Source: Saccostrea cucullata
Taxonomy: Eukaryota
NCBI RefSeq assembly: GCF_032062105.1
Contig: NW_026938415.1
Span: 1-64,000 of the forward strand
Length of the DNA stretch: 64,000 nt
Direction of reading: 5' to 3'
Shown: one piece after another, positions 274 to 53,359 of the stretch
Layout of the letters: each line of letters starts with the position of its first letter
How positions within the stretch are numbered: position 1 is the first letter of the stretch
Program-made: the position numbers and the translations under genes
The notes under the pieces: generated by a model
Seen by the model: the letters and a program-made list of their open reading frames with translations, nothing else
Databases searched by the model: none
What the model was told of the DNA's origin: nothing

Positions 274-2800
274 ATGTTTACATGTGCCGGCATGTGGATG
301 AGGAAGACCCAATTACTCATCTTCAGAGGATCAGAGGATACGGCGGCACAACCTTCTTATGGGACAAGTCTTTGTCACCAATCATCAGAAGTTTACCAGA
401 CGGATGTCACCGAGTCTCAGCCATACAAATGGAGTGCTCATGCACCTAAACCCCTCTGCATCATCAATGTATATATATTTCCCAAGCAGAAGCAACGGTG
501 ACTACAGGACTCAGTATGTAGAATCCCTTGATATTCTTATAGAGGTTCTTATCAAATATCGGCACCACCACACTATCGTCATAGGAGGAGACATGAACGC
601 ATCCGTATACAGAAATAATAGATGATAAAGAATACAGATGATAAAGAAATCAAAAAAATCCTAAAGACAGAAAGGCTCATTACACCTAACAATTATACCA
701 CCTCCCCCACATTTTACCATCATGATGGGAAGTGAAAATCTCAAACAGACCACTTCTTCATACCAACAGAACAAGAACAGATATCCATTTCTGAAGTTCA
801 AACCCAGGGACCGCACCCCCTCAACACTTCCGACCATACAATGTACCATGATTAAAGGGATAATAAAAGTACAGCTACGGAAGAAATTTCCTAAAGGAAA
901 ACAGACAAAATTAACCTCCAAAAAGCCGAGATGGGATAAATGTGACAAATCTACATATAACAGTACCGTAAGCAAGCTGCTTAATGAAGCGACACCCCCT
1001 AAATGTAACTTTGATATATCCCTTAAAGTCATCCACCTGACAAATGTGCTGCATAAAAGCATGAAGAAACTCCATTCATAAATAAGAAACACTTAATGAA
1101 CTAAAGAGGAAATCTAAAGGCCGTACCCCATGGAACAAAGAAGTTGGAGAAGCTGCAAAATTATCAAAGAACGCATTCTTTGAATGGAAAAAACAAGGGA
1201 TCGCCTCAGGCACCATCAAACAGGTCACTCAAAAAACTGAAAACCCAAAAGAAAGAGCTGCGCAGAAAACAAAGACAAGATCATGCCAGAATACGTGAAG
1301 ATAAATACTCTAAAATCATGCATGCTCAAGAATTCGACCATAAGCTTTTCTACAAGCTAATTAGGGAGCGAGGTGCATCAAACAACCAAGACAGAGAAAC
1401 CTTGATACTTGACGATCACGAACTAGATAGTGAAGAAGACATACTTAATTATTGAAAAACACATTTCGAAAGGCTTGCTACACCACAGGACGGTGACAAA
1501 TTTGATCAGCAGACACACAAACTTGTCAGAGAAGAACTGATAAACCTAAACACAAGCCCAGACGATACACAAAAGATTAGAGAAAAGACCATTAGTTAAG
1601 TCATCAGTATATTGGCCAGAGGCAAGGCTCCTGACCACTTGTGCATCAAAATCGAACATGAAGCGGCGGAGAGCAACTGGTCAACTACCTAACTTGTCTG
1701 ATCAACGACATCATCCAGCTACACCATGTCCCAGAAATTTTACAAACTGGCCTTCTGACACCCATCATCAAGAAAAACAAAGACCCAAAATTACCAGGCA
1801 ATTACAGAAGCATAACAGTAACACCGGTTATTAACAAGCTACTTGAAGGAATTTTGCAAACTAAAGTTGATGACATCCTAGACCCCACACAAAATAAACT
1901 AAAACGAGGCTTTACCAAGAAAACAAACCCACTAAACGCTGCTCTTCTAATATCAGAAGGAATCAATGAAGCTTGGGACGCTGGAAAGCCTGTTGCTGTT
2001 ATTACTCTAGATGCTGAAAAAGCCTTTGACAAAGTCAACTACCAACATCTATTAAGAAAGATCTACCTCAGCAGAATCGACCATAGCAACTGGCTACTGA
2101 TAAAAACCCTACAAACAGAGACCCTGACTATGGTAAAGTGGAAGGGAAACTTGAGTCCAGCCTTTGCGTGCCAGCAGGGAATCCGGCAAGGAGTCACATT
2201 ATCACCTAGCTTGTATAAGAGATATAATAACCAGATGTTGGACAGATGATGTGGCCATTATTGCAGACAATCCAGTCGACCTACAATGTACCCTGCATAT
2301 TGTGCATAACTGCACACAATCTGACGGAGTGAGCATTAACTCATCAAAGAGTGATGCAGTTATATTTAACACCACGAAACAGAGAGAAAAAAACAGACCT
2401 GGAATTTAGGATCAGATCAAATACAGGAGGTGGAGAGAACTACTCATATCGGCTTGACCCGACAGAAAGGCAATAAACTAGCGGTAGGAGAGAGAATACA
2501 GAAAGGAAGACGAACTCTCCACGCTCTGCTGGGAGCCGGTCTACATGGGGAGAATGGTTTAAACCCGACAGTTTCCTATAAACTCTACACCACGTTCTCC
2601 AGACCCAGATTCAGCTACGGCCTCGAAGTCACCAGCCTAACAAGCAAGGATATTAAGACAGAGCTCGAGAAATTTGAAATCAAGTTCCTTAAAAATATCC
2701 AAGGCCTACCAGATAGATGCGGAAATATTGCAGCCTACATACTACTTGGAGCGATGCCCATAAAAGCGAGATGCAAACCTTACGTGAATAAAAAAAAAAA
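274..2800 (+). mobile_element. Decayed non-LTR retrotransposon ORF2 (APE endonuclease + RT), probably RTEX-like; many stops and frameshifts
   Basis: The fragmented ORFs carry collinear LINE motifs: IINVY.P and IVIGGDMNA (APE); RGFTK..NPLNAALLISE, VITLDAEKAFDKV, QGIRQG..LSP.LY and DDVAII (RT, with the region before ADD deleted); and GLHGENGLNP...YGLEV...IQGLPDR (C-terminal). An A-run ends the homology at ~2790-2800. Confidence 0.8.
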
Positions 2801-3090
2801 GGTATATAATTCAAGGAGAATTAATTTTAACAATTTTATAATGTCAAGTGAAATAGTTTTTACAATTGTTTTTGTTTTGAACATATTTTATTGACAATAT
2901 GTCAAAGGGATTGGACACAAGTTCCAAAAACTTAGATAGTCCTCTCCCATTTTTACAATTGATAGGGAATAGATCGTTAGCGAAATTCAATTTAAGCTTC
3001 CATGACCCTCGCTAATAATTAACTTTTATTTTAAAAATTCTGCTCATACGGTTTAATAATGATCGTTATAATTGAAAAGGTAGATTACAC

Positions 3091-3164
3091 ACTAGCTGCA
3101 GAACTCTAGCTCTAGCCCGAAAATTCGGACAGATCAGGCAAAGAGCTACAGTTCTGCAGCAAGT
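3091..3164. repeat. Small hairpin/MITE-like inverted repeat
   Basis: actagctgcagaactctagctct (3091-3113) matches the reverse complement of agagctacagttctgcagcaagt (3142-3164) at 21/23. Confidence 0.55.
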
Positions 3165-4224
3165 ACCACACAAGTGTATATTATTAATTATCATGTATGA
3201 ATGAATTATATAGGGGTAAATCAAAATACCAGTAAGACGATTTACCAGTTATAGAATTAAATTTCTATATTGTTTAATACATGTACTTACCTTAAGAAGA
3301 AATATAACTTGAATCTTACCTTTAATTAATAAAAGGCACCGCGCAGGTGATGAAGGTTATTTGCATCATCTTATTTATAGGTTTGTATGTCATTAAAGAT
3401 CGAAAACACCTGGTTCTCTTAATGTGTATCATATGATCATGTAAAGTAATAAAATCCAAAAGTCGAAACTCTGAAGAAAAGAATTATGTGAAATTATGCA
3501 GTTTAACAAATTTAAGTCAATAAAGAGTGGGCAATAAATAATAACATCTTGATATATTTTATTTTACACCTCCCGAAACAAGATACTTCCAACTGCACAT
3601 CAGGTGGAAGGTATTATATTATTCAGAATTGCATACTTAATAATCCATACAATAAAAACAACTAAAATGTTCCATGAACACCCAATTTGCCGTTGTTAAT
3701 TATACAGAAGAGGCAAATCTATTGCTCGAGGATTCGAAGCTAAAATATAGTAAGGGGGAAAAATGAGAATTAGTATAGAAAACAAATACATGAACTAAGC
3801 CCAGTATTAAATTTTAAAGCGATTAAATGATTGTTATAGAGTTTGCATGAAAAATTCTACTTTCCATTGAGAAAAAGATAATTTATAATGAATACCACAG
3901 CATGCATATTTTTAAGACATTCAATGGTGAGGTTTTTATCCTAAGTGGACATCCACCAACCCCCCACCCCCTCCCTTATCACCAGATAATACGTGTAAGC
4001 ATAATAGGCTGTATGGTTCTGCAGATTTCTAGACAGCAGTAAGTAAAAGTCATCCAGAAACTGTTCCCTTAATGGTTATTCTCGTTTGATCTTTGTATAG
4101 TTCTAAATAAGAAAAAAAATATAATTGAATTTATACATTTAGTAAATATCACACTGTACTTTATAATGACATTGATTATATGTATGAACTAAATACATTT
4201 TCAGCATACATGCATTATATTAAC

Positions 4225-4304: not shown

Positions 4305-6104
4305 CACATTAACGTACTTATTTATACTAACTTGAAAAGTTATACAAAAATGCAATACAGGGGAAAAACCCATATAAAGTATTAAAACAGTAATCTTGGA
4401 CAATAAGCACGGAAAATACAAGAAAAAGAAAATTCCGCTTCTTTTTAAAACATAATCTTTGAAATTTTTTAGTACAGCAGAAAATATGAAGAAAATGTAA
4501 AGGAGCAAAAATGTCAATTTTGACTGAAATTATGAAAAAGAAAGGTATATTCTGCCAATTCCCATGAGATGTGACGAGGTCATCGCGTGATTCAGTTATT
4601 CAGCAACTATGCAAAATAATTCTGGCGGTTGATTTCTCAAAAAAATATAGCACTTTATTTTCTTTACATGATCTAGATTTGTGGATTTTATGACAATGAA
4701 CTATTTTTTATCAGTATTTAACGTTGTATTCAAAACGTTTCAACATCGGATTCTGCCAGATTTTCAGTGGTTTTGTTTCCAACCCTACCTTCGTCATTGT
4801 GAACTTTTTGACATTTTAGTTGTAATTGGAAGTCGAAAAAATCTGATTTCTTCAGAGCCCAATGAATTCACTTGCTACGATTAGTAGTCAAGAAGATGAC
4901 GCCCAGGTGCAGTTACTGACCGAGAATGATTCATTTCTAACAAAGTCTACCGGGGCGGAAAGTGCTTTTGTGTTGTGGACAGACTCAGATGCGCAATAGA
5001 TTTAAGAGGCAAAATGTTAGATGACATACAAGAAAATGTTTGAAACCACATCTTTGTTTGGTGACAGAAAGTTACCCGTCTTTAACACAATTTATATAGA
5101 TCTCTACAATTTGCCAAAATGTCTTCATTATCTTGTAGTTTTACTTTGGTTTCATTGTAATCACAATTGTGTGTTTATATAGTAAAATTTATATTATATT
5201 GTGGCATTTTACGATAGTTTAAAGCGACATTATTACTTCTCAAGAATTATGGCATTTAGATTTTAGTTGGTTGTATTTTTAACCGTTTAATATGTTTTGG
5301 CATAAATCTTTGTCATTTAATATCTATTATTCTCTTAACAATGTGTTGTGTCGTATTGTGCATGAGGACGAGCACTGAGGACCACCTTATTAACGTGTAC
5401 CTTTCCAAAAAGAGTCAAGGGTGAAAGAGCATAAGTGAAATATATGGAGGTAACGAACAACACTCAAGCTCAAAAGTTTATTTAACAATATTTATTACAC
5501 ACTTAGTAATAAATACAGGTTTTTTGCATATGCGATATGGCTGACGTCACAATAGCCGTATCAGCCCTCCAAGGCTGATATGGATTTGCATGGCTGATAA
5601 CCTATATCAGCCCCGCAAATCCATATCAGCCCTGCAGGGCTGATACGGCTATTGTGACGTCAAAATCACACCCTCAGTAAATTAAACCACAAAAACAGTA
5701 CTTGTGATCATACACAATTTTTGATAGGTTCATATTCTCTTAATTTTAACTTTTTTTTTTGAAAAATAAGGTTATCTTAATTTACTAATGCATGTAATAG
5801 ATTATTTTCAAATTACGGATCGAGTGCATTGAAATAGAAGTAGAAACAAACCCAAATCGTATGAATACGAAAATAGTGCCCGACATGTAGACAACCACAA
5901 ATTTCTGAGAGGAAAGTTTTTACCTAAAAACTTGAAATCATCGAAAATCAGAAGCCCAAAAATGCAGCAACTTTAATTAGGATAATGAGTTAAGTATTGT
6001 GTGACAACCTATAGAAGAAATGTAACGCTAAACATCGGGAAAACCTTCTGTGTATTTTCGGTAAGTCAATGGTATTTACCTGGTGAGCGATACTCATTCT
6101 GTTT

Positions 6105-7385
6105 ATGAACATACATTTAACAATGTCAGATATCTCCAAGAAACGGGCACTAGATAAAATGGACAGTACTGACGAGAGTATGGAGCAAGGTGATCAAAGT
6201 AATCAGAAACCGGAAGATTTTCAGTTAAGGGATATAATGCAGGGCATTGCAAGTATTCAGACTACTTTGGCGAATTTTATGTTACGGCTCGATGGACAAG
6301 GTCGACACTTAGATGAAATTACGAAAGAAATCAGAGCAAAAAATGGCATTCAAGAAAGACTTGAAACTGTTCAAGAACAGGCTAATGACACAATATACCT
6401 TGTGACAGAACTACAGGATAACCAGAAAAAAATGGAACGTGAAATGAACAGACTCAAAAATTATGTAATTCGTCTTGAATACCGTGTAAATTCACAAAGT
6501 AACCAAATAGTTGATCTCAAGGCAAGGTCAATGGAGAATAACATCATTGTTAGTGGTCTGCAGGAAAAAGGCCCCGAGAGGAAGTCACCAGAGAACCTTG
6601 CGCAAATTCTAAGAAATGTATTCATATCAGAGATGAACATGGGGGAGACAGCAGTTGATGAATTACAAATACAGAAACTCTTCCGAATGGGAGAATACGA
6701 TGCTCAACGAAAATTTCCAAGACCAGTTTGTGTGCAATTTGCCGATAAAGCCCAAAAAGACCTTGTTATGAAACACATAAAAGTTCTAAAAGAAAAGAAT
6801 TCGGACATAAGAATTGCCCAACAACAACCAGAGGAGATACGGGAACGACGAAAACAGCTGTATGAAGTTCAAAGAAAATATGCAGAACGAAATATCGAGA
6901 CGAAAATGAAGGGGGACAAGCTTATCTTTACCCAGAGTAATTCAATCTACAGAGAGAAAGTAGGATCTCTTCCAACGGCAGATGAGGTGATTTCCAGCGA
7001 CGCAGTCAAGATTACCGTTAACCCTGGAAAGTCAATTGAGGACAACGGAAACCGGTTTATGGCGCATTCCACCCAAGTCGATTCCTATAAACAGATTAAA
7101 CGATCATTAGTGGAAATCATGCGTATCGAAACCGTACCCAGCGCGAGCCATAACGTTTATGCTTATCGCTTCACAAGCAGTGATGGGATAATCCATGAAG
7201 GATCAAATGATGACGGGGAACATGGTGCGGGAAGGTTACTTTTAAAAATGCTTGCCGAAAACGAAGTTAACAACGTACTGGTGGTTGTCTCTCGATGGCA
7301 TGGAAACAATATTGAACCTCGTCGATTTTCCCATATCAAAGAAGCAGGTCTTAGTGCGGTAAAAAATTTACCAACTTCAGTTTGA
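6105..7385 (+). CDS. L1/Tx1 ORF1 protein (coiled coil + RRM + CTD) with a C-terminal IMPACT/YigZ (UPF0029) domain, 426 aa, intact
   Basis: Heptad-rich region aa ~40-140; [14 protein letters not shown] and PRPVCVQF (L1 ORF1 RRM); [10 protein letters not shown]...KMKGDKLIF (CTD). From aa ~312 to 426: NRFMAH...[10 protein letters not shown]...[15 protein letters not shown]...[11 protein letters not shown]...PRRFSHI, matching the IMPACT/YigZ consensus. Confidence 0.9.
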
Positions 7386-8122
7386 AAACATGAAAAATAA
7401 ACACAGTATCATCTTTGACTCTAGAGCTGTTCTGGTCTTGATCTGAAATTATTTTTTAAATGTGATCTAAAGTTAAAATGTGTAATACATTTTTATTGAA
7501 TTTTCAAGTATCCCGGATTTCTTTCGTCCAGCCAATAATATTCCGGCAGTTTTTGAAACATACTATTTCCTGTTCTTGCTTACCTTATGGCATTTCCCGA
7601 AATAAGTTGTGTATTCTTTTTATCAGCTCAACTGTAGGCGATATGTAAGTTTAATTTTTCTACTCAACATGTCACATTATTTATAGGGATCTGTATACAT
7701 TGTCCTTTTGGTTACTTATAGATACATAATCTAATTAATTAAAAAGACGGACAAGTTGTGATTACATTACACATGTAGTGGTTTCCCTCATAAGAAAATA
7801 AAATATATATTAATAAATTTTAATTCACAACCTGTTAGGTAGATTCATATATTTTCTACAAATAGAATAGACCATGTATATTGTATTTCCTACACCTGTA
7901 AACCCATTCTCATTCTTTTAAGAGATGTTTAATGTTAACTCTTAAGAAATATCAATTATAATCTGTTTTTGGTATAAACTTTCTACTCTCAAAATCAACA
8001 AGGCATGTATTCTCAGGCAACCCACACATTTTTGTATATACACCTTTTTTATTTTTTTGTTTTTTCTTCTGTTTCTGTCTATCAGGGGGTCAGCAGTGTT
8101 TTCATCATTTTTTTAGAATATT

Positions 8123-9379
8123 ATGGATTATAATAATGATAACAGCCTAAAAATACTCTCAGTAAATTGTCAAGGCCTTGGTAACATTCATAAAAGAAGA
8201 GATGTGCTAAAGAACTTAAAAGCTAAGAATTACAATATTTACTTTTTACAAGATACCCATTTTGTAGAAAAAGATGAAAATATGATAAGAGCACAGTGGG
8301 GATATAAAGCATTTTTTAGTTCATTCAAGTCCAATTCAAGAGGAGTCGCTATCCTCTTTAACAACAACTTTGATTTCAAAATCGTCAATGAATATAAGGA
8401 TACTGATGGTAATTTTCTAATTTTGGATGTCTTTATTGAGGATGTCTCTTTTTTACTAATAAATATTTATGGTCCAAACTCTGACACACCTAATTTTTAC
8501 ATAAGTTTAGTCCATAAAATAGAGCAGATTCATTCCTCTCATAAAATTGTTTTAGGGGGTGATTTTAATTTAGTTTTTGATAAAGATTTGGATTCAATGA
8601 ATTACAAAAATTTAAACAATCCAAAATCAAGACTTGAAGTAATAAAGCTTATGGATGCTTTAAACCTTAAGGACGTATTTCGTGAAGATAATCCAGTTTT
8701 AAAAAGGTTTACCTGGAGACGAAAAAATCCACTCAAACAAGCTAGACTTGACTTTTTCCTGATAACAGAATCCATGCTAGCTATGAATCCACGTGTCAAG
8801 TTTGAAAATAGTTATTGTTCTGATCATTCACCAGTTCTATTACATTGTAAATTAAATGAATTTAAAAAGGGAAAGGGTTTCTGGAAATTCAATAATTCCC
8901 TGTTGCATGAAAAAGAATATGTTGAACAAATAAAATGTAAGATTAAGGATGTTAAAATCCAATATTCTTGCCCAGTATATAATATGGAAAAAATAAGTTG
9001 CATCGAGAATGATACTATTCAACTCACCATTAGTGACCAACTCTTTCTTGATATTTTGTTAATGGAAATAAGAGGAAAATCAATTTCATTTTCAACATAT
9101 AAAAAAAAGAAAACTTTCGAAAGAGAACAACAGTTAGAGAGAGAAATATTAGAATTAGAGCAGAATTTAACAGATCAGCTAATTAATGAACTTGAAGAAA
9201 AGAAAAGAGAAGTAGAGGAAATAAAGAACATAAAATTTAAAGGTCAATGCATAAGGTCAAAGGTCAAATGGATCGAGGAGGGAGAAAAACCCTCAAAATA
9301 TTTTGTAAGTTTAGAATCAAGAAACTATGTAAGTAAGCAAATACCTAAAATAGAAAAGGACAATGGATCAATTGTTTCT
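8123..9379 (+). CDS. L1/Tx1 ORF2, N-terminal part: apurinic-like endonuclease + linker (interrupted by a MITE at 9380)
   Basis: APE motifs SVNCQGL, FLQDTH, SRGVAIL, INIYGPN, LGGDFN, FTWRR, ARLDFFL and SDHSPV, followed by GFWKFNNSLL and KWIEEGEKPSKYF. Confidence 0.92.
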
Positions 9380-9926
9380 CATCTTCGCTAGCCAAGGGTT
9401 TCTGATACGCTACTCTCCTCATAAACCCTTGGCCTACGGTGTTCATAGAAATAGGGATTTTTTTCCAGAGTTCTGATTGGATTTCAGTATACCCAGGTCG
9501 ACCAATCAACAATTGTTTTTTTGTAAATGACGATATTTGCGTTCGGGATACATCTTCACTCTTTAATCTCGGAAATGAAAAACGCAGTAAACAACGATCC
9601 GTAAGATAACATTCAATTCTATGAATAGCCATGGTGTCATCCAATATCTTCTAAATATGTGATCAAAAATCTATATTGAAGCATCAGATTTGTTCTATAC
9701 ATAATAAATAAACATAACTCAATTATTGCATCTTAATTATTCTTGAAAAAAACTTTGATTTAATTTTTTCTTAACACGTGTCTTTATTTCTGGCGATGAC
9801 GCAATCTGTGCGTACTTGATAGATTCGAGATCACGTGACAGAAAACAATCCCGTCTTTTGACTTCACCATAGGCCAAGGGTTTATGAGGAGAGTAGCGTA
9901 TCAGAAACCCTTGGCTAGCGAAGATG
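9380..9926. mobile_element. 547-bp non-autonomous TIR DNA transposon (MITE) with a 9-bp TSD
   Basis: 62-bp TIRs (9380-9441 and 9865-9926, 1 mismatch) and an exact TSD, ATTGTTTCT, at 9371-9379 and 9927-9935. Removing the element restores the ORF2 frame (..DNGSIVS|SQSEIL..). Confidence 0.95.
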
Positions 9927-9935
9927 ATTGTTTCT

Positions 9936-12496
9936 TCCCAAAGCGAGATATTAAATGAAACGAAAGCTTTCTATGAAAACTTATATAAGAAAAGGGAAAA
10001 TGTAGATACTGAAAATATTCATGATAGACTTAAAGATTATGATATTCCCAAATTAAGTAGAGAAGAATCAAACAGTCTGGAAGGTCCTGTAACAAACTTT
10101 GAAGTTTTAAACTTCTAAAACAAATGAAAAATGACAAAAGTCCAGGACCGGATGGATTTACATGTGAATTTTTTAAATTTTTCTGGAAAGATATTGGCTC
10201 CTTTATTACAAGAGCAATAAATAATTCAAATGAAAAACTTCAATTCTCAGACTCAAATAAATTAGGAATCATTACTTGTATCCCAAAAACAGGAAAGCCA
10301 AAACAATTTCTGAAAAACTGGCGACCCATTAGTCTTTTAAATGTTGTTTATAAAATAGCATCAGGATGCATCGCGGAACGAATGAAAACTAAATTGGGCA
10401 AGTTGATAAATAGAGACCAAACTGGATTTATAAAAGATAGATTTATTGGAGAGAATATTAGACTGATATATGATATAATGCATTATACAGAATATAATCA
10501 AATACCTGGCCTATTGATGTTAATTGACTTTGAAAAGGCTTTTGATACAATCTCATGGAACTTTATATATCAAACCCTTGACTTTTTTAATTTTGGACCC
10601 TCTTTTAAAAATTGGATTAGAACCTTCTATAATGGTATTAAATCATGTGTTATACAAAATGGATTTACTTCAGACTATCTTTTCCCCCAAAGAGGATGCA
10701 GACAAGGCGATCCGATCTCACCTTATCTCTTTTTGTTATGTGCTGAAATTCTTGGAATCTTAATTCGTAATAATCAAGATATAAAAGGTATAACAATTGA
10801 GGGTGAAGAGTACAAACTCTCTCAATATGCTGATGATACTTCTCTTATCTCAGATGGTTCACCAAGATCTATGGATGGTATTCTCCGAGAATTAGATTAT
10901 TTTGCTAATATATCAGGCTTAAAGATAAATTTCTTAAAAACTAAAATGATATGGATTGGAAGTAAAAAATTTTCAAGGGACGCATTTCATCACTCAAGGT
11001 GGAAGCTTGACTGGGAAAATTCAATATTTGATCTTCTAGGAATAAAATTTTCAGTAAACTTGGATGAAATGCTTGATCTTAATTATTCCATAAAGCTAAA
11101 TGAAATCAAAACTTTGTTACGTAAGTGGAGTTTAAGGAAACTTACCCCAGTTGGAAGGTTAACAGTAATTAAAACTTTAATATTACCCAAATTAAACCAT
11201 TTAATTCTTACTTTACCAAACCCTAAGTCAGACTTTTTGAAGATGTTTGAGATTGAATTGTATTATTTTCTTTGGGGTAGCAAAACTCACAAGGTAAAGA
11301 AAAATGTTATAATCCAGGACTATAAATATGGAGGTCTAAAAATGATTGATTATACAGAATTCATTTCTGCCCTTAAATCAAGTTGGATTAGAAGACTTAT
11401 TCACTCACAAGCAAACTGGGTAAAATTATTTGAAGCTGAACTAAAAGTTGATATAAACAATCTTTGGATAAGGGGTTCTGATTATATTCTGAATCTCTCA
11501 ACAAGATTAAATAATGTTTTTTGGAAAGAAGTTCTGTCAAGCTGGGCAAGGCTAACTATAATAAATCAAGAAAAGGACAGGCATGTGCTTTTTGAACATA
11601 TATGGAATAATCCAAGGATTAAAATTAATAATAAATCTTTTTTTTGGAAAAACTATTTTAATGAAGGTATTGTTTTTCTTACTGACCTCTTTAACAATGA
11701 GGGTAGTTTCATAAGTCTCGACTCATTAATAAACTTGAAAGTGAAAACAAATTTTGTTGATTATAATGGACTTAGAATAGCAGTATTAGATAGACTGAAA
11801 AATATAAACTGTGATGAAATTAAAAATGCTAAGTTGATTGGACCACATCTTCCAAATTCCATTTTTGTATTTTATAAACATGATAAAGGTTGTAAGGATA
11901 TGTATAACATATTTATAAGTAAAAAGAAAGAGCCAGTTAACTCAATCAAAAAATGGAGAGAAAACAGATTTATCTTTGATGAGGCAGACTGGGCTAAAAT
12001 ATTTGAACTTCCTTTTAAAATAACTCAAGAATCTAAACTTCAATGGCTACAGTATCAAATCTTACATAGAATCATCCCAACTAATTATTATCTTTTTAGA
12101 CTAAAATTGATCGATTCTCCAGCATGTAGTTTCTGCAGAAGTGACATAGAAACAATTGATAATTTATTTGTTGAATGTTTCCATGTAAAAGAACTCTGGT
12201 GTACTATTGAAGAATGGATTTTAAATAAGTTTAATATTCATTGTTGTTTTGATAAACAAGCAATACTATTTGGTAAATATGAAAATATGAATGTTTATAA
12301 ATTTCAAAACCTTTTAATACTTATTGTAAAACAATTTATTTTTGCCTGTAAATATAAGAATGTTCCAAGAATAGATGCTGAAGCTGTATTAAAGAGGATC
12401 ACAGATAGAATTTTGATTGAAAAATTTTTATTGATGAAGAATTGTAAATATGAAGAATATGAAAGGCATTGGCAAAATATTTGTGATATATTGTAA
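9936..12496 (+). pseudogene. L1/Tx1 ORF2, C-terminal part: reverse transcriptase + zinc knuckle (1-bp frameshift at ~10113-10116; open 10124-12496)
   Basis: Motifs KSPGPDG, NWRPISLLN, DQTGFI..R.I..NIR, IDFEKAFD, GCRQGDPISPYLF, QYADD, SGLKIN..KT and CSFC..ETIDNLF.EC (expected His is Asn). The reconstructed ORF2 is ~1270 aa, typical of L1. Confidence 0.92.
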
Positions 12497-13085
12497 GTAA
12501 TAGAGTTACATATACAAGCTGATATATACATGTACATCCTATAATTTATTTGAGTGATTTTTTTTGTATTATTTGTAATAGAAGAAAGGCTTTTTTCTTG
12601 CTGACCCCCCACCCCCCTTTTCTTTGTCTTTTTTTTTTTTTAAAAACACCTTTCACATTCTATAAATATAACTCTATACTGTGTGTAGACCTGATGTTAT
12701 TGTGTACCAAATGATGAAAATTATTTTATATGTACATGTGAAAGTGTTAAAATAAAAAAAAAAAAAAAAATAAAAAAAAAAATAAAAAATAAAAATAAAA
12801 AAAAAAAATAAAAAAAAATGGTTTGAGCGATAGACCCTATACATGAATCTAAGAAGTCCACGCATAATTATTTACTTATTTTCTTCTCAACTTAATGTAT
12901 GCTGTCTTTTATTACTAAGTATGTAATAAACATATTAATACATTACCTTTTCCATATCACATCCTGTATCAGCCCGAGAGACCAATATCAGCCAGAGGGC
13001 CGAAGGCCCGAGGGCTGATATTGGTCGAGGGCTGATACAGGTTGTGATATGGAAAAGGGTATGTATTATTCTCTATTGAAATTCT

Positions 13086-27668: not shown

Positions 27669-30554
27669 ATGATGAAATCCTGTAGTTTTTGTGGCGCCCA
27701 CACAACAGAATTACTGAGGTGTAGTCGCTGTAAGGCGAAATTCTACTGCTCCAGGATGTGTCAACAAAATCATTGGAAAGAGGGACACAAGATGGAGTGT
27801 AGAGAGGAGAGAGTTGAAGGTAAGACGAATACATACCTGTAAAAATGAACAGTTCTCTCAATTCAATAATATTCAGTGGTTGATGTGAATATCTGTAGAA
27901 AAGAAGAACCTTTGTGAGTGCAGTTTTTGTGGCGTCCATTCCTCAGATTTAAAGAGATGTAGCCGATGTAAGGGAAAATCCTGTTGTTCACAGGACTGTC
28001 AACAAAAGCACTGGATAGTTGGACATAACAAAGAGTGCAAGAAAAAGAGTAAAGACGGTAAGCCAACAGCTTTACAAGAAAACGATGTTTTAAAAACTAA
28101 GGACAAGCTTTTACCAAAGAATGAATGACTAGATCAAAAATTTCATAAACCTTAAAATTTCTTGAGATTATTATCATACAATTTTGAAAACAAATTGAAT
28201 TCTTTTTATTCACATTAAATCACAATTTAACCAAAGTTTAAAATTGAAATAAATCGCAAAAATTGATTTTGATCTTGGATTGTACGTTCTTCTGAAAGAC
28301 TCTACATGGAACAGTCTTACAGATTTAAATACTGTGCACATTTTATTGCGACCACTTTATTTTCAGTAGACGAGACAATTGAACAACGATTTTTCCCAAC
28401 ATAATGTTACAACTTTTATTTTGATAGAGTTAACTTCACCAGTGTTGACATGCACTTCTTGCAAGAAACCGTCACAGCAGGTAAAGAGATGTAAAGGATG
28501 TCTACAGGTGTCCTACTGCTCCAGAGAGTGTCAAGTTCAGGACTGGGCCCAGAAACACAAGGATGAATGTGTGAAGATACATGCACAATCAAATAAGGGC
28601 GATGGTTTACAAGAAGTGAAAAAAGGTGACTAGACATATGCTGTCTTCATAAAAAGACATCCATTGATGAAGCTACCAAATTTGAATCGCTTTATGTTTG
28701 TTTCAAGATCTTTAATATGCATTATATTATACGTTTTATTTTGATAGAGTCGACTTCACCAGTGTTGATATGCACATCCTGCAAGAAATCGTCAGAACAG
28801 TTAAAGAGATGTACAGGATGTCTGCAGGTGTCCTACTGCTCCAGAGAGTGTCAAGTTCAGGACTGGAACCAGAAACACAAGGATGAGTGTGTGAAGATAC
28901 ATGTACAGTACAAGGAGGATTTACAAGAAGTGGAAAAAGAGGACCAGAAAGATGATGTGTTCAGCAAGGAGAAGAGCGATAATGGTCATAAATCACTCAA
29001 TATGTGTACTGTATGTGGCAAAAAGGGTACAATGAAAGTATGCCAAAGGTGTAAAATCCAAAAGTACTGCTCTCCGGAATGTCAAAAGGCAGACTGGCAA
29101 ACACATAAATCACACTGCTCACAAGAGGAAAAATCAACAAGTAGGAATGAAAAGGTTTCCGATGTTCCATCGCCAATATGTGCAAACTGTAGAAGTCAAA
29201 GCGCCAGACTGAGGTGTTCTGGCTGTAGGGTTGTTTACTACTGTTCGAAAGATTGCCAGATGACAGATTGGAATAAACACAAAACGTCGTGTAAAGCATA
29301 CAAGTCTCAGCCTAAAGTAAGGGAGACGCTCACTATTGGAGAGTGCTCAATGATGGGTCTTGTCACACCAGAAGAACACGGAGGCAGAAACCAAAATGAC
29401 GGGAAATTACAGTTAATAGGAGAAAAAAGCGATTTCACAAATTTTTCCTGCAATCGATGTTTACAAAAAATTGCCCCTGGGAATTTCAATGTCACCTGTA
29501 ACGAGTACAAAACCGCAATATACTGTTCAAATCCTTGTATGGAACTGGATAAATCTGAACACAGGAAAACATGTGCAACATCCTATATTCCAGGTTCAGG
29601 TAATACAATGTCGTCATGCGTTAAAAATGACGCGAACGGTCAATCTATAAGACTGGACATTTCTCCTTCCCACGCCCATTTACCCTACACAAGAAATCCG
29701 TTATTTGTTGAAGAAAATGTGGATTTGAATTGGATCGTGGAAAGAACCGCGCAATCATGCAGTGAGGCGATAGAGAAAACTAAAAGAAAGTTTCCTTATT
29801 ACACTATGATTACCCGTCTCAGAGAAATTCCAATAGAGGAGAGGTCAATGCTTACTTCCAACATATGTACACTTCCGTATGTGTTTCTCGCATACATAAG
29901 AAGATTCCATAAATACAGGGGCTGTCACAATGTATACTTGCAGGTAAAATATTTATTTTAGAAAAATTAAATATTTAATCCCTGCATCACATACAGTCTG
30001 TAAGGATATTATTGGCAAGTATGAAGGATCCAACCTTTTAGCTCAGAATAGATATTTCCCGATCACGACATGGATTACACGACGGGTGTGACCGGTCGAC
30101 ATAGGATACTCACTCCTCCATGGCACCTGATCCCACCTCTGATGTGTCGGAGGTCCGTGTTTGCTCTGTTCCTGTTTTGCATTGCTTTATGAACTTTGAT
30201 ATTGAATACTGTTTGCTATCTCCATATCCTTCATGAAAGTGTAAAATGGATTGCTTATTAAAAAAGGCTTTTGCTTTGATAAAGTTCTCAGTAATCGTCT
30301 CCTTTGTGGTTAACCTTATAATGTTTAATTCTGGTAGTGTTTTAATTTCTTTTCAGGATTCTGAAAGGCGTGAGATTTATGCTTCCTTCTACCTCCCTAA
30401 CGACGATCCAACACCATACTTTGAGTGGAGTGACCTTGTTCCTGGCAAATTCGTGGCCATTTTGTTTCCTTGTATCCATTTCTTTCTAGATTCCACTGTT
30501 GGTTTGCGCGTGGATAAATCCAAGAACTTCTACTGTTTTGATGTTGAAGACTAA
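27669..30554 (+). CDS. Multi-MYND zinc-finger protein, ~633 aa; predicted join(27669..27819,27899..28057,28428..28625,28748..29943,30357..30554)
   Basis: Seven CxxC..CxxC..YCS.xCQ..xW..HK..C motifs (one per short exon, four in the long exon, the last degenerate). All introns are GT-AG with compatible phases (1,1,1,0), and the total of 1902 nt is divisible by 3. A likely 5'UTR exon at 26184-26273 has in-frame stops. Confidence 0.8.
28748..29943 (+). CDS. Long exon of the MYND gene (4 MYND fingers + start of the C-terminal domain)
   Basis: ORF 28717-29961; acceptor ttttgatag at 28747, donor cag|gtaaaa at 29943/29944. Confidence 0.88.
30053..30233 (+). mobile_element. Naiad-like Penelope 3'-end fragment inside the last MYND intron
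   Basis: Conserved gggtgtgaccggtcgac...ctcctccatggcacctgatcccacctctgatg...ggaggtccgtgtttgctc block. Confidence 0.75.
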
Positions 30555-51787: not shown

Positions 51788-53359
51788 ATGCCACTACAAT
51801 CACAAGAATTTATGGCAGGGCCGATGATGAATTTACATTCAAGCCATAAGGAATCCAATGCAAATAAAGTTACCTCAGTAAACAAAAACAAATTAACATC
51901 ACAACCTGGTGTATCAGCCTCTCAGTCAGCCAAGAAATCAGTTTCAGGGAAAGTTAAATCTAATGCAGGAAATCCGACAACGAATCCAACATCTCAGTCC
52001 GGAGAGGTTGACCCTGAAACGATTTCTGCAGACGAACAACTCGATGAAAATCAAATGCAATCAAAATCAGAAAAACCTACAAAAAAGAAAAAAGATGAAA
52101 AAGTTTCAAAGAATGTAGATTCAGAATCAGAAGAACAGACCGCAAAACCAGCAGATCAAGCTGAAGAGGTAGACACTCAAAGCTTTTATGCAGCCGAAAA
52201 ATCGATTCAAAATCAAATACCATTAAATACAGCAGAATATCCACCCAAGACAACCGAAAACAAATATTCTTTTAAACCGTTAGAATCTAGTTGGAATGCA
52301 GAAACACAACTTACACCCAAGAGAATTGCCAGTAAGGATGATTTATCTTTACAAACTGATGCGACATCAAAAGCATCTGCTCGGTCAGCAACGCAATTCG
52401 CTTCAGAGGAAGCATCTTCTGACAGAATAGGACCAGTTGCAAAACCAAATGCTCAACACTCTCAGTCAAATGCGAGGTTTAAAGATCCAGAATCAGCTAC
52501 AAAATCAGCTGCAAATCCAGTGACTGTTAACGTTGCTTCCAACAATGTTGGATTCAACGAATGTCCCAAAACAAATTTGTTGTCAATCAAACATGACACT
52601 CCAAGCGTTAAAGATTCCGCTGAGAAAACCCTATCACTATCCAATGAAAAAACAACAGAAACTGAAATAAAAGAAAAGCAGAATTCATCTTTGAGTTACA
52701 TTTCGAAATTATCAACCAATGCCGAATCTAAAACTCCAGGAAAAGAAAGCAGAAAAACAAATGCACAATCACCAACTCAATCAGCTGAAAAGAAAGTATT
52801 TTCTAAACCAGAATTTGCTATAAAACCACCTGTTAGTTCAGCGAATAACAACGTTGCATCCGATGGTGATGGATCCTCAATGAGGTCAATAGAGGAATGG
52901 CCGCCAAATAAATTTGCCACTTCAGATGATAAACCGTCTGTTGAAAACACACCTTCAATGTCCGTCGAAAAAACAAAAGAAGATGAACAAAAAATGGGAC
53001 AGAATAAATCTTCGAATTACTTGTCCGACCAATCAACCAACGTCGGAACTCTATTATTGGAAAAGACAGGCAACCCATTGGTTGCCATTGCGATAGCGGT
53101 TGGTGTGGAAATTGTATTTGTATCGTTCGAACTTTACAACATTCACAAAATTAAAATCGATGATTCCATGACTAGAAGACAGAGAAGAAGGGCAATGTTT
53201 TCATCTGTAATTGCTGTAGGGGCTGGTTTATTTGCATGGTTTGTCGGTGGGTTATATATTCCAAATTCTTTTGGGGGGAAATGTCTTGTATATGTTGCTT
53301 TTCGTTTTGGGGGTAAGTTCCTAGGAAAGCAATTCTTTGAAAAACTTTTTCCGTTTTAG
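51788..53359 (+). CDS. Uncharacterised 523-aa protein: long disordered S/T/K/E/N-rich region + C-terminal hydrophobic, Gly-rich membrane segments
   Basis: 1.57-kb open frame in AT-rich DNA. An upstream acceptor (tttttcag, 51764) is followed by an in-frame TGA before the ATG, so the gene has a single coding exon. Hydrophobic stretches are LVAIAIAVGVEIVFVSF and VIAVGAGLFAWFVGGLYIP. Confidence 0.75.
   Translation: MPLQSQEFMAGPMMNLHSSHKESNANKVTSVNKNKLTSQPGVSASQSAKKSVSGKVKSNAGNPTTNPTSQSGEVDPETISADEQLDENQMQSKSEKPTKKKKDEKVSKNVDSESEEQTAKPADQAEEVDTQSFYAAEKSIQNQIPLNTAEYPPKTTENKYSFKPLESSWNAETQLTPKRIASKDDLSLQTDATSKASARSATQFASEEASSDRIGPVAKPNAQHSQSNARFKDPESATKSAANPVTVNVASNNVGFNECPKTNLLSIKHDTPSVKDSAEKTLSLSNEKTTETEIKEKQNSSLSYISKLSTNAESKTPGKESRKTNAQSPTQSAEKKVFSKPEFAIKPPVSSANNNVASDGDGSSMRSIEEWPPNKFATSDDKPSVENTPSMSVEKTKEDEQKMGQNKSSNYLSDQSTNVGTLLLEKTGNPLVAIAIAVGVEIVFVSFELYNIHKIKIDDSMTRRQRRRAMFSSVIAVGAGLFAWFVGGLYIPNSFGGKCLVYVAFRFGGKFLGKQFFEKLFPF

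Follow-up and report, generated by a model that had tools for sequence, protein, structure and literature searches.

The 64,000 nucleotides of Saccostrea cucullata DNA analysed here (hereafter the window; NCBI RefSeq assembly GCF_032062105.1, contig NW_026938415.1, positions 1 to 64,000 of the forward strand) hold at 5877-12819 one dead copy of a recently active L1-like long interspersed nuclear element (LINE). The protein of its first open reading frame (ORF1p) ends in a UPF0029 domain, the 'ancient' domain of IMPACT (Impact_N). This domain architecture and its membership in the element we regard as practically beyond doubt, and from architecture and selection together we are highly confident that the domain is a fourth, C-terminal domain, integral to ORF1p and under selection. 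The IMPACT fusion goes back to the ancestor of a large LINE clade of deep divergence and is not an accident of the window locus.

ORF1 is an uninterrupted frame of 426 amino acids (aa) on the plus strand (6105-7385, stop codon included), and the IMPACT domain takes up aa ~306-420 (7020-7364, plus strand), as delimited by Pfam, the match to Yih1 and Foldseek. A UPF0029 domain in frame at the C-terminus of ORF1 had been proposed in an earlier note on this DNA, made from the letters alone, and Pfam agreed: PF01205 matched aa 316-415 with an E-value of 7.8e-20 and 71.3 bits (cut-off 27). Among solved structures the best sequence match of the window ORF1p was Yih1, the yeast homolog of IMPACT (6bqi), over aa 310-419 (E 1.5e-11), while the match to E. 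coli YigZ was marginal (E 0.12). In the predicted structure the domain is modelled with a pLDDT above 95, and Foldseek matched it to 2cve (E 1.8e-6), 6bqi (E 2.9e-6) and 1vi7 (E 1.9e-5). Tested singly, 99 of 100 family members passed PF01205, and Pfam detected no RWD domain in the window ORF1p or in any of the 100 members, in line with the RWD absence noted earlier.

The consensus of 126 diverse family members is that of a canonical IMPACT domain, with GSxF, ATHN, DDGExGAG and RWxGGxHLGxxRF. Residues F318, A347, H349, D369, D370 and E372, and likewise G374, G376, R397, G404, R407 and F408, are kept in 84-98% of members, and the residues kept across the family from F318 to F408 are the UPF0029 signature positions. 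The window copy retains His349 and DDGE and has N-R-F in place of S-x-F, a trait of oyster lineages as against the G-S-x-F of the family consensus. At position 404 it has Glu where 97% of the 126 members, including sister copies of 98% identity, have Gly; G404E is thus private to the window copy. The N-R-F and the altered GG..LG loop had been taken as signs of a modified activity, a suggestion that the family does not support: since the family consensus is canonical, N-R-F a trait of oyster lineages and G404E private, the altered motifs are not a sign of changed activity in the family. When aligned to Yih1, the C-terminal block RW-GG-LG-RF-I proves to be of the eukaryotic IMPACT type, and the family profile scored 115 bits against Yih1 (E 2.7e-32), compared with 36 for Thermus TTHA1053 and 25 for E. 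coli YigZ. The far higher score for Yih1 favours a eukaryotic IMPACT gene as the probable source of the domain. The earlier description of the domain as captured therefore holds for its origin, the domain being far closer to eukaryotic IMPACT than to YigZ, and has to be changed as to its reach, the fusion being ancient and ancestral to the clade and not specific to a copy or a family.

The N-terminal ~300 residues of the window ORF1p had no Pfam match of their own. The L1-type Transposase_22 profile (PF02994) matched none of the 100 members at E<=0.001 and did not match the window ORF1 at E<=1. On the other hand, the profile of the 126 members matched human L1 ORF1p 2ykp with an E-value of 4.5e-11 over profile positions 85-287, which covers the coiled-coil end, the RRM and the C-terminal domain (CTD). 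It also matched 2ldy, the RRM-CTD solution structure (E 4.4e-10), and 2w7a, the isolated RRM (E 1e-5). AlphaFold2 run with the 126-sequence alignment gave a model with pLDDT 90.7 and pTM 0.77 (a single-sequence run was unusable, pLDDT 44.7), in which residues 39-142 form a long helix, 146-300 an alpha/beta RRM-CTD unit and 306-420 another alpha/beta domain. The top Foldseek match of this model in the PDB was the human L1 ORF1p trimer 2yko, with a template modelling (TM) score of 0.71 by target, with 2w7a at 0.70, and Transposase_22 clusters of the ESM Atlas matched it at TM 0.70-0.73. As Transposase_22 fails to match while profile and fold do, homology to L1 ORF1p is visible only at the level of profile and fold. 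By these comparisons residues 1 to ~300 represent a predicted L1-type (type II) RNA-packaging protein with the coiled coil at aa 39-142 (6219-6530; helices 39-77 and 82-142), followed by an RRM at aa ~143-240 and a CTD at aa ~241-300 (together 6531-7004, assigned by profile and Foldseek), all on the plus strand. The intact frame and the L1-type domain order read earlier from the letters are hence confirmed, and the likeness to L1 ORF1 holds for the family profile and not for Transposase_22.

ORF1 is followed by ORF2, which has an N-terminal apurinic endonuclease (APE), a reverse transcriptase (RT) and a C-terminal Cys/His motif, as in L1-superfamily LINEs. The closest solved relative of the RT part is human L1 ORF2p (E 1e-52), while R2 elements matched at only 5e-22; the APE part matched human L1 ORF2p at E 2e-25. 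In all ten loci fetched from the genome of the window, tblastn placed an ORF1 with the IMPACT domain, APE and RT one after the other in this order on one strand, and the ORF2s of these loci are 34-98% identical to that of the window. Outside this genome, contig L049 encodes a 511-aa ORF1 with UPF0029 and then a 1245-aa ORF2 with APE, RT and zinc finger, 34% identical to the window ORF2 across its whole length. Contigs L050 and L051 show a similar order of ORF1 with IMPACT domain and ORF2, and both genes are also listed for the contig of P0155, which is known from its called genes alone. As an exception, contig L048 has the ORF1-IMPACT frame without a called ORF2. The distance between the two ORFs is usually 440-1080 nt. 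Because the order is kept across loci down to 34% ORF2 identity, the fusion is a stable ancestral feature of the LINE clade, and the earlier statement that the domain is part of the mobile unit and not of a neighbouring gene is confirmed.

Two deep types of ORF1, A and B, were found, and the IMPACT domain is present in both. One locus, L037 (G000:C19440:639894-649893), was compared with the window and with L033, L036 and L038-L040. Its ORF2 groups with the window lineage (APE 63% and RT 83% identity), while its ORF1 is of the second deep type, 33% identical to that of the window and 48-54% to those of L038-L040. This discordance between the ORF1 and ORF2 sequences points to an exchange of the ORF1 module, or to a burst of change in ORF1.

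The family is abundant. Searched in six frames, the window's genome yielded at least 100 ORF1p matches, with intact ORF1 copies at 98-99%, ~81%, ~64% and ~30-34% identity along with decayed copies with stops, and a Pfam UPF0029 search of the genome gave at least 149 matches above cut-off, ~45 of which lie in open frames of at least 390 aa. An exhaustive HMMER search with a profile of 15 ORF1 proteins against 1.84 billion cluster representatives returned 731 clusters at E<=1e-30; among the best 150 of these, nearly all match from the coiled coil through to the end of the IMPACT domain. The fusion is accordingly far from limited to the one copy in which it was first noticed. Two ESM Atlas clusters have Mollusca as their commonest taxon. 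Host range can be given for members with an organism name (3 of 30 clusters examined, most others coming from unlabelled assemblies or metagenome contigs), and all named hosts are pteriomorph bivalves: Saccostrea cucullata, S. echinata, Crassostrea/Magallana gigas, C. angulata, Ostrea edulis, Pinctada imbricata and Tegillarca granosa. Word-indexed searches, with the domain alone and with a 100-sequence profile, found oyster proteins only, with no host IMPACT and no wider hosts.

One candidate among the best 150 clusters, P0160, was rejected as an ORF1; it is a protein with three UPF0029 domains, and hence not all top matches are LINE proteins. Its contig L052, from the European Nucleotide Archive (ENA), carries these three tandem UPF0029 domains, an open frame with a single UPF0029 domain and a canonical pair of RWD and UPF0029, located at 2628-3176, 7001-8710 and 11127-12231 and interleaved with HEPN_DZIP3 open frames. 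Such a local clustering of IMPACT-domain genes is unusual, and it has no relation to LINEs. In the window's genome itself, C1292 shows two partial, exon-like UPF0029 matches on the minus strand, ~800 bp apart (494551-494667 and 495471-495644), which cover profile positions 68-107 and 18-72. From this exon-like arrangement C1292:494551-495644 is probably a true, intron-containing host IMPACT gene. A Pfam search of the genome for RWD gave seven loci, none of them on C1292, and a search with the RWD domain of L052 gave no match.

The domain is evolving under constraint. In pairs with measurable synonymous divergence (dS) the ratio of nonsynonymous to synonymous divergence (dN/dS) of the IMPACT segment was 0.05-0.29, similar to the rest of ORF1 and well away from the value near 1 that the earlier note had named as counting against its reading. 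In comparisons between families dS has reached saturation, and yet the IMPACT segment shows a dN of only 0.07-0.19. Of all parts of ORF1p the IMPACT segment is the one best conserved in the alignment of 126 members: its mean pairwise identity is 32%, while the RRM reaches 30%, the CTD 25% and the coiled coil 18%. The domain must contribute to retrotransposition, given that selection maintains it in hundreds of lineages.

The window copy is dead because ORF2, unlike the intact ORF1, is broken by a miniature inverted-repeat transposable element (MITE) of 547 bp and by a frameshift. The MITE (9380-9926, no strand assigned) has terminal inverted repeats of ~58 bp in which 59 of 61 positions match, is bordered by a 9-bp duplication, ATTGTTTCT, at 9371-9379 and 9927-9935, and is absent from the near-identical copies L031 and L032, being secondary to the LINE. 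RNA reads and one contig join 9370 straight to 9927, without the MITE. The frame of ORF2 changes near 10115 in three-frame translation, and in 11 of 11 reads from other copies an extra T follows 10115. The MITE is by far the deepest-covered stretch of the window in the RNA runs, at 10-48 raw reads and hundreds in contigs, and the reads over it have numerous variants and loose ends, from which we conclude that it belongs to a repeat family that is transcribed and of high copy number. At other places in the genome the LINE family looks to have been active recently, judging from an intact 1273-aa ORF2 adjoining an intact ORF1 on contig C19546 and from a synonymous divergence among close copies of 0.035-0.09.

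The remaining parts of the copy, all on the plus strand, were delimited largely by comparison with L031 and L032. Both of these copies, of 98-99% identity, start aligning at 5877 in blastn, so that the 5' end is common to three copies and the 5' end with the 5' untranslated region (UTR) was set at 5877-6104; RNA reads from the repeat upstream of the LINE part from the window sequence at 5864. L031 is colinear with the window through ORF1, the spacer and the APE part, and L032 reaches the A-rich tail. The inter-ORF spacer (7386-8122, 737 bp) has no open frame of 80 aa or more and is non-coding and fast-evolving, being colinear in the 98% copy L031 and not alignable by blastn to the 81% family. 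That this spacer is an intron is not supported, as no splice joint across it was present in the RNA reads. The first part of ORF2, with the APE endonuclease and a linker, lies at 8123-9379 (Pfam Exo_endo_phos, E 1.1e-9; the human L1 endonuclease match given above) within an open frame spanning 8123-9391. The second part, with RT and the C-terminal zf-RVT, lies at 9927-12496 (Pfam RVT_1, E 4.7e-33; zf-RVT, E 2.2e-6), its open frame spanning 10124-12496. The 3' UTR and A-rich tail follow at 12497-12819 (tail ~12752-12819), as read from the sequence, with L032 aligning to 12784. At the LINE ends, a search for target-site duplications of 7 bp or more gave none.

Two palindromic, hairpin-forming repeats of ~120 bp, rich in GGCTGATA/TATCAGCC, flank the LINE at 5540-5665 and 12945-13060; they look like small foldback or MITE-like elements. 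Further along, the window holds a 414-aa open frame at 28717-29961 (plus strand) that encodes four zinc fingers of the MYND type (Pfam zf-MYND, E 8e-37), and a second open frame of 523 aa at 51788-53359 for which Pfam gave no match.

A homotrimer was predicted from three copies of residues 95-426. It reached an ipSAE of 0.84 against 0.01 for the best of three controls, with at least 90% of contacts in common between runs and a partner pLDDT of at least 84, and its interface is mainly formed by residues 96-142 of the coiled coil. In calibration, made with two copies and not three, 21 of 30 proteins whose solved structure is a same-chain pair passed the mark, and none of 23 with a single-chain structure did. 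Trimerisation of ORF1p through its coiled coil with display of the IMPACT domains, as proposed in the earlier note, is thus plausible as a prediction.

For the role of the domain we put forward, tentatively and by analogy with Yih1, a docking to the translation machinery. Three IMPACT domains would be shown per ORF1p trimer on the ribonucleoprotein particle (RNP), and each might act as a docking module for a conserved component of the host translation machinery, the ribosome or polysome. Docking could aid the loading of ORF1p onto its own mRNA in cis, or alternatively the translation of the ORF2 located downstream at the usual 440-1080 nt. Yih1 and IMPACT associate with ribosomes, actin, Gcn1 and Cdc28 (PMC4503747), and the residues that are invariant between Yih1 and YigZ sit on one face, which the authors read as the binding site for a conserved molecule (PMC4503747). 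The wider idea, that UPF0029 is a self-contained module for ribosomes or translating messenger RNPs (mRNPs) which an old LINE clade co-opted for cis-preference or for ORF2 translation, we consider rather doubtful.

Several observations weigh against these proposals, or limit what they can be built on. The spacer between the ORFs is just 34 bp in L051, and therefore a role bound to a long spacer cannot be general. Three oligo-dT RNA-seq runs labelled with the same species contain no reads at 95% identity or above on ORF1 and the spacer; ORF2 is thinly covered in one of the three, by reads that carry other copies' variants, and a metatranscriptome run gave short contig pieces only. With no reads on ORF1 and spacer and with contigs this short, a bicistronic transcript or transcription of the subfamily gains no support. 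In Yih1 the regions sufficient for binding ribosomes, actin and Gcn1 are largely the linker and adjoining parts (PMC4503747), and the binding regions are not mapped cleanly to the ancient domain (PMC4503747). In the literature reached, no biochemical activity or ligand is established for any UPF0029 protein. The trimer model puts the IMPACT loops 340-348 and 398-399 on the coiled coil of the neighbouring subunit, and this contact, if real, would make the conserved face partly structural and not a ligand site. The passing of the trimer prediction may itself be a memory of the solved L1 ORF1p trimer. As to the class of the element, by its defining features it belongs with the L1-superfamily LINEs having a type II ORF1p, an assignment made at superfamily level, with L1 proper and Tx1 taken together.

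The main rival to docking is that the IMPACT domain is a module that binds nucleic acid or a small ligand and is possibly catalytic, extending what ORF1p does on the RNP as an RNA binder or chaperone. The pattern of His349, Asp369-Asp370-Gly-Glu372 and Arg397/Arg407, kept in 88-98% of the 126 members, is of a kind typical of active or ligand-binding sites; YigZ-type proteins of bacteria, for which neither GCN1 nor eukaryotic ribosomes exist as partners, have these residues too, and in the AlphaFold2 model the domain is joined directly to the RNA-binding RRM-CTD unit. The acidic DDGE motif, on the other hand, seems ill-suited to direct nucleic-acid binding, and the lack of any activity or ligand for UPF0029 proteins in the literature reached bears on this explanation as well. 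We regard it as possible on the doubtful side, and the present data do not discriminate between docking and a ligand or nucleic-acid role. That the domain is a decoy in the GCN1-GCN2/eIF2-alpha pathway, blunting a translational stress response triggered by retrotransposition, would fit its eukaryotic IMPACT type and the finding that host IMPACT/Yih1, by competition for Gcn1, acts as an inhibitor of Gcn2 (PMC4503747). Yih1 needs its RWD, however, both to bind Gcn1 and to inhibit Gcn2, and mutations in helix H3 of the RWD abolish both (PMC4503747); since ORF1p has no RWD, such a decoy is improbable.

Two further explanations question the domain's place in the element or its usefulness, and both are exceedingly improbable in our judgement. 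According to one, the frame belongs to a family of host genes, an ORF1-IMPACT fusion that was domesticated and is merely located near LINEs. The names given by NCBI and UniProt, 'protein IMPACT homolog' or 'Impact N-terminal domain-containing protein', and the strong purifying selection would agree with this; order and spacing relative to APE-RT are nevertheless conserved in twelve loci whose DNA was read and in one contig known from called genes, with ORF2 identities of 34-98%, copies have their 5' and 3' ends in common, dozens to hundreds of copies are dispersed with decayed ones with stops among them, and it is the separate, exon-split UPF0029 match on C1292 that resembles a true host IMPACT. 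The other takes the domain as a neutral passenger, a read-through capture in decay. The substitution of a nearly invariant Gly in the window copy (G404E) is what one would expect of a passenger, but the low dN/dS, the conservation of the domain above all other regions of ORF1p and its retention in 99 of 100 diverse members and in both ORF1 types speak strongly against it.

Docking to the translation machinery, should it hold as the role of a ribosome or mRNP module, would be the first case of the function of this domain exposed free of RWD and GCN1, and would define a new class of LINE ORF1p. The function of UPF0029, from bacteria to humans, is a long-standing puzzle, and a retrotransposon that depends on the domain offers a genetic read-out with an isolated, RWD-free form. 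There is also a practical consequence, as public annotation names these transposon proteins as a host 'protein IMPACT homolog'. An entry of this name is a salinity candidate with a high fixation index (FST) in C. gigas (PMC5989259), and another is upregulated in male pre-spawn tissue of S. echinata (PMC12564202). Many oyster 'IMPACT homolog' entries being LINE ORF1, both signals may come from a transposon rather than a host gene, and the calls need re-examination.

The ORF1-IMPACT architecture appears to be undescribed so far. The earlier note had taken it to be uncatalogued, and full-text searches joining UPF0029 or IMPACT with retrotransposon, ORF1 or LINE found no paper. A UPF0029 accessory domain is unlisted in PMC4120745 and PMC3905857 and in the L1 ORF1 survey PMC5203782, which mentions neither UPF0029 nor molluscs. 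The affiliation to L1/Tx1 suggested previously is correct insofar as the element is an L1-superfamily LINE; the hallmarks of Tx1 that were looked for, a shared insertion target and a CCHC knuckle, were not found, as the flanks of three copies of 98-99% identity are unrelated upstream of 5877 and Pfam detected no CCHC knuckle in the window ORF1p or in the 100 members.

Compared with human and mouse LINE-1 (ORF1p structures 2ykp, 2yko, 2ldy and 2w7a), the oyster element has the same order of coiled coil, RRM and CTD, a predicted homotrimer and an ORF1 that likewise lies upstream of an APE-RT ORF2, and differs in the extra C-terminal UPF0029 domain of ~115 aa and in an inter-ORF spacer that is usually long (~440-1080 nt, 34 bp in L051). 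With IMPACT/Yih1, which consists of RWD and ancient domain (6bqi), it shares the C-terminal family and the motifs GSxF, ATHN, DDGE-GAG and RW-GG-LG-RF-I. The oyster ORF1p is without the RWD and without the charged linker, its domain being fused to a retrotransposon RNA-binding protein, and therefore it is not an IMPACT orthologue despite its database names. The bacterial proteins YigZ and TTHA1053 (1vi7, 2cve) share the UPF0029 fold in their N-terminal part (Foldseek E 2e-6 to 2e-5), while the match in sequence is limited to 25-36 bits and their C-terminal DUF1949 is missing in the oyster ORF1p.

The same modular principle is seen in other LINE ORF1 proteins with accessory domains, i.e. the esterase of CR1/L2-type elements, PHD and CCHC knuckles, and UPF0029 would be a fourth domain type in this known repertoire. 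An ESM Atlas cluster of 419 aa, with Pfam NADAR (PF08719) in 100% of its members, aligns in structure with the full length of the ORF1p model (TM 0.52 over 295 residues; residues 2-426 of the model), which hints that other ORF1-like proteins may carry a different C-terminal accessory domain. Evolution of ORF1 is modular in elements of the Jockey superfamily (PMC4120745, PMC3905857), and the discordance between the ORF1 and ORF2 of L037 resembles the reticulate ORF1 evolution found there (PMC4120745, PMC3905857).

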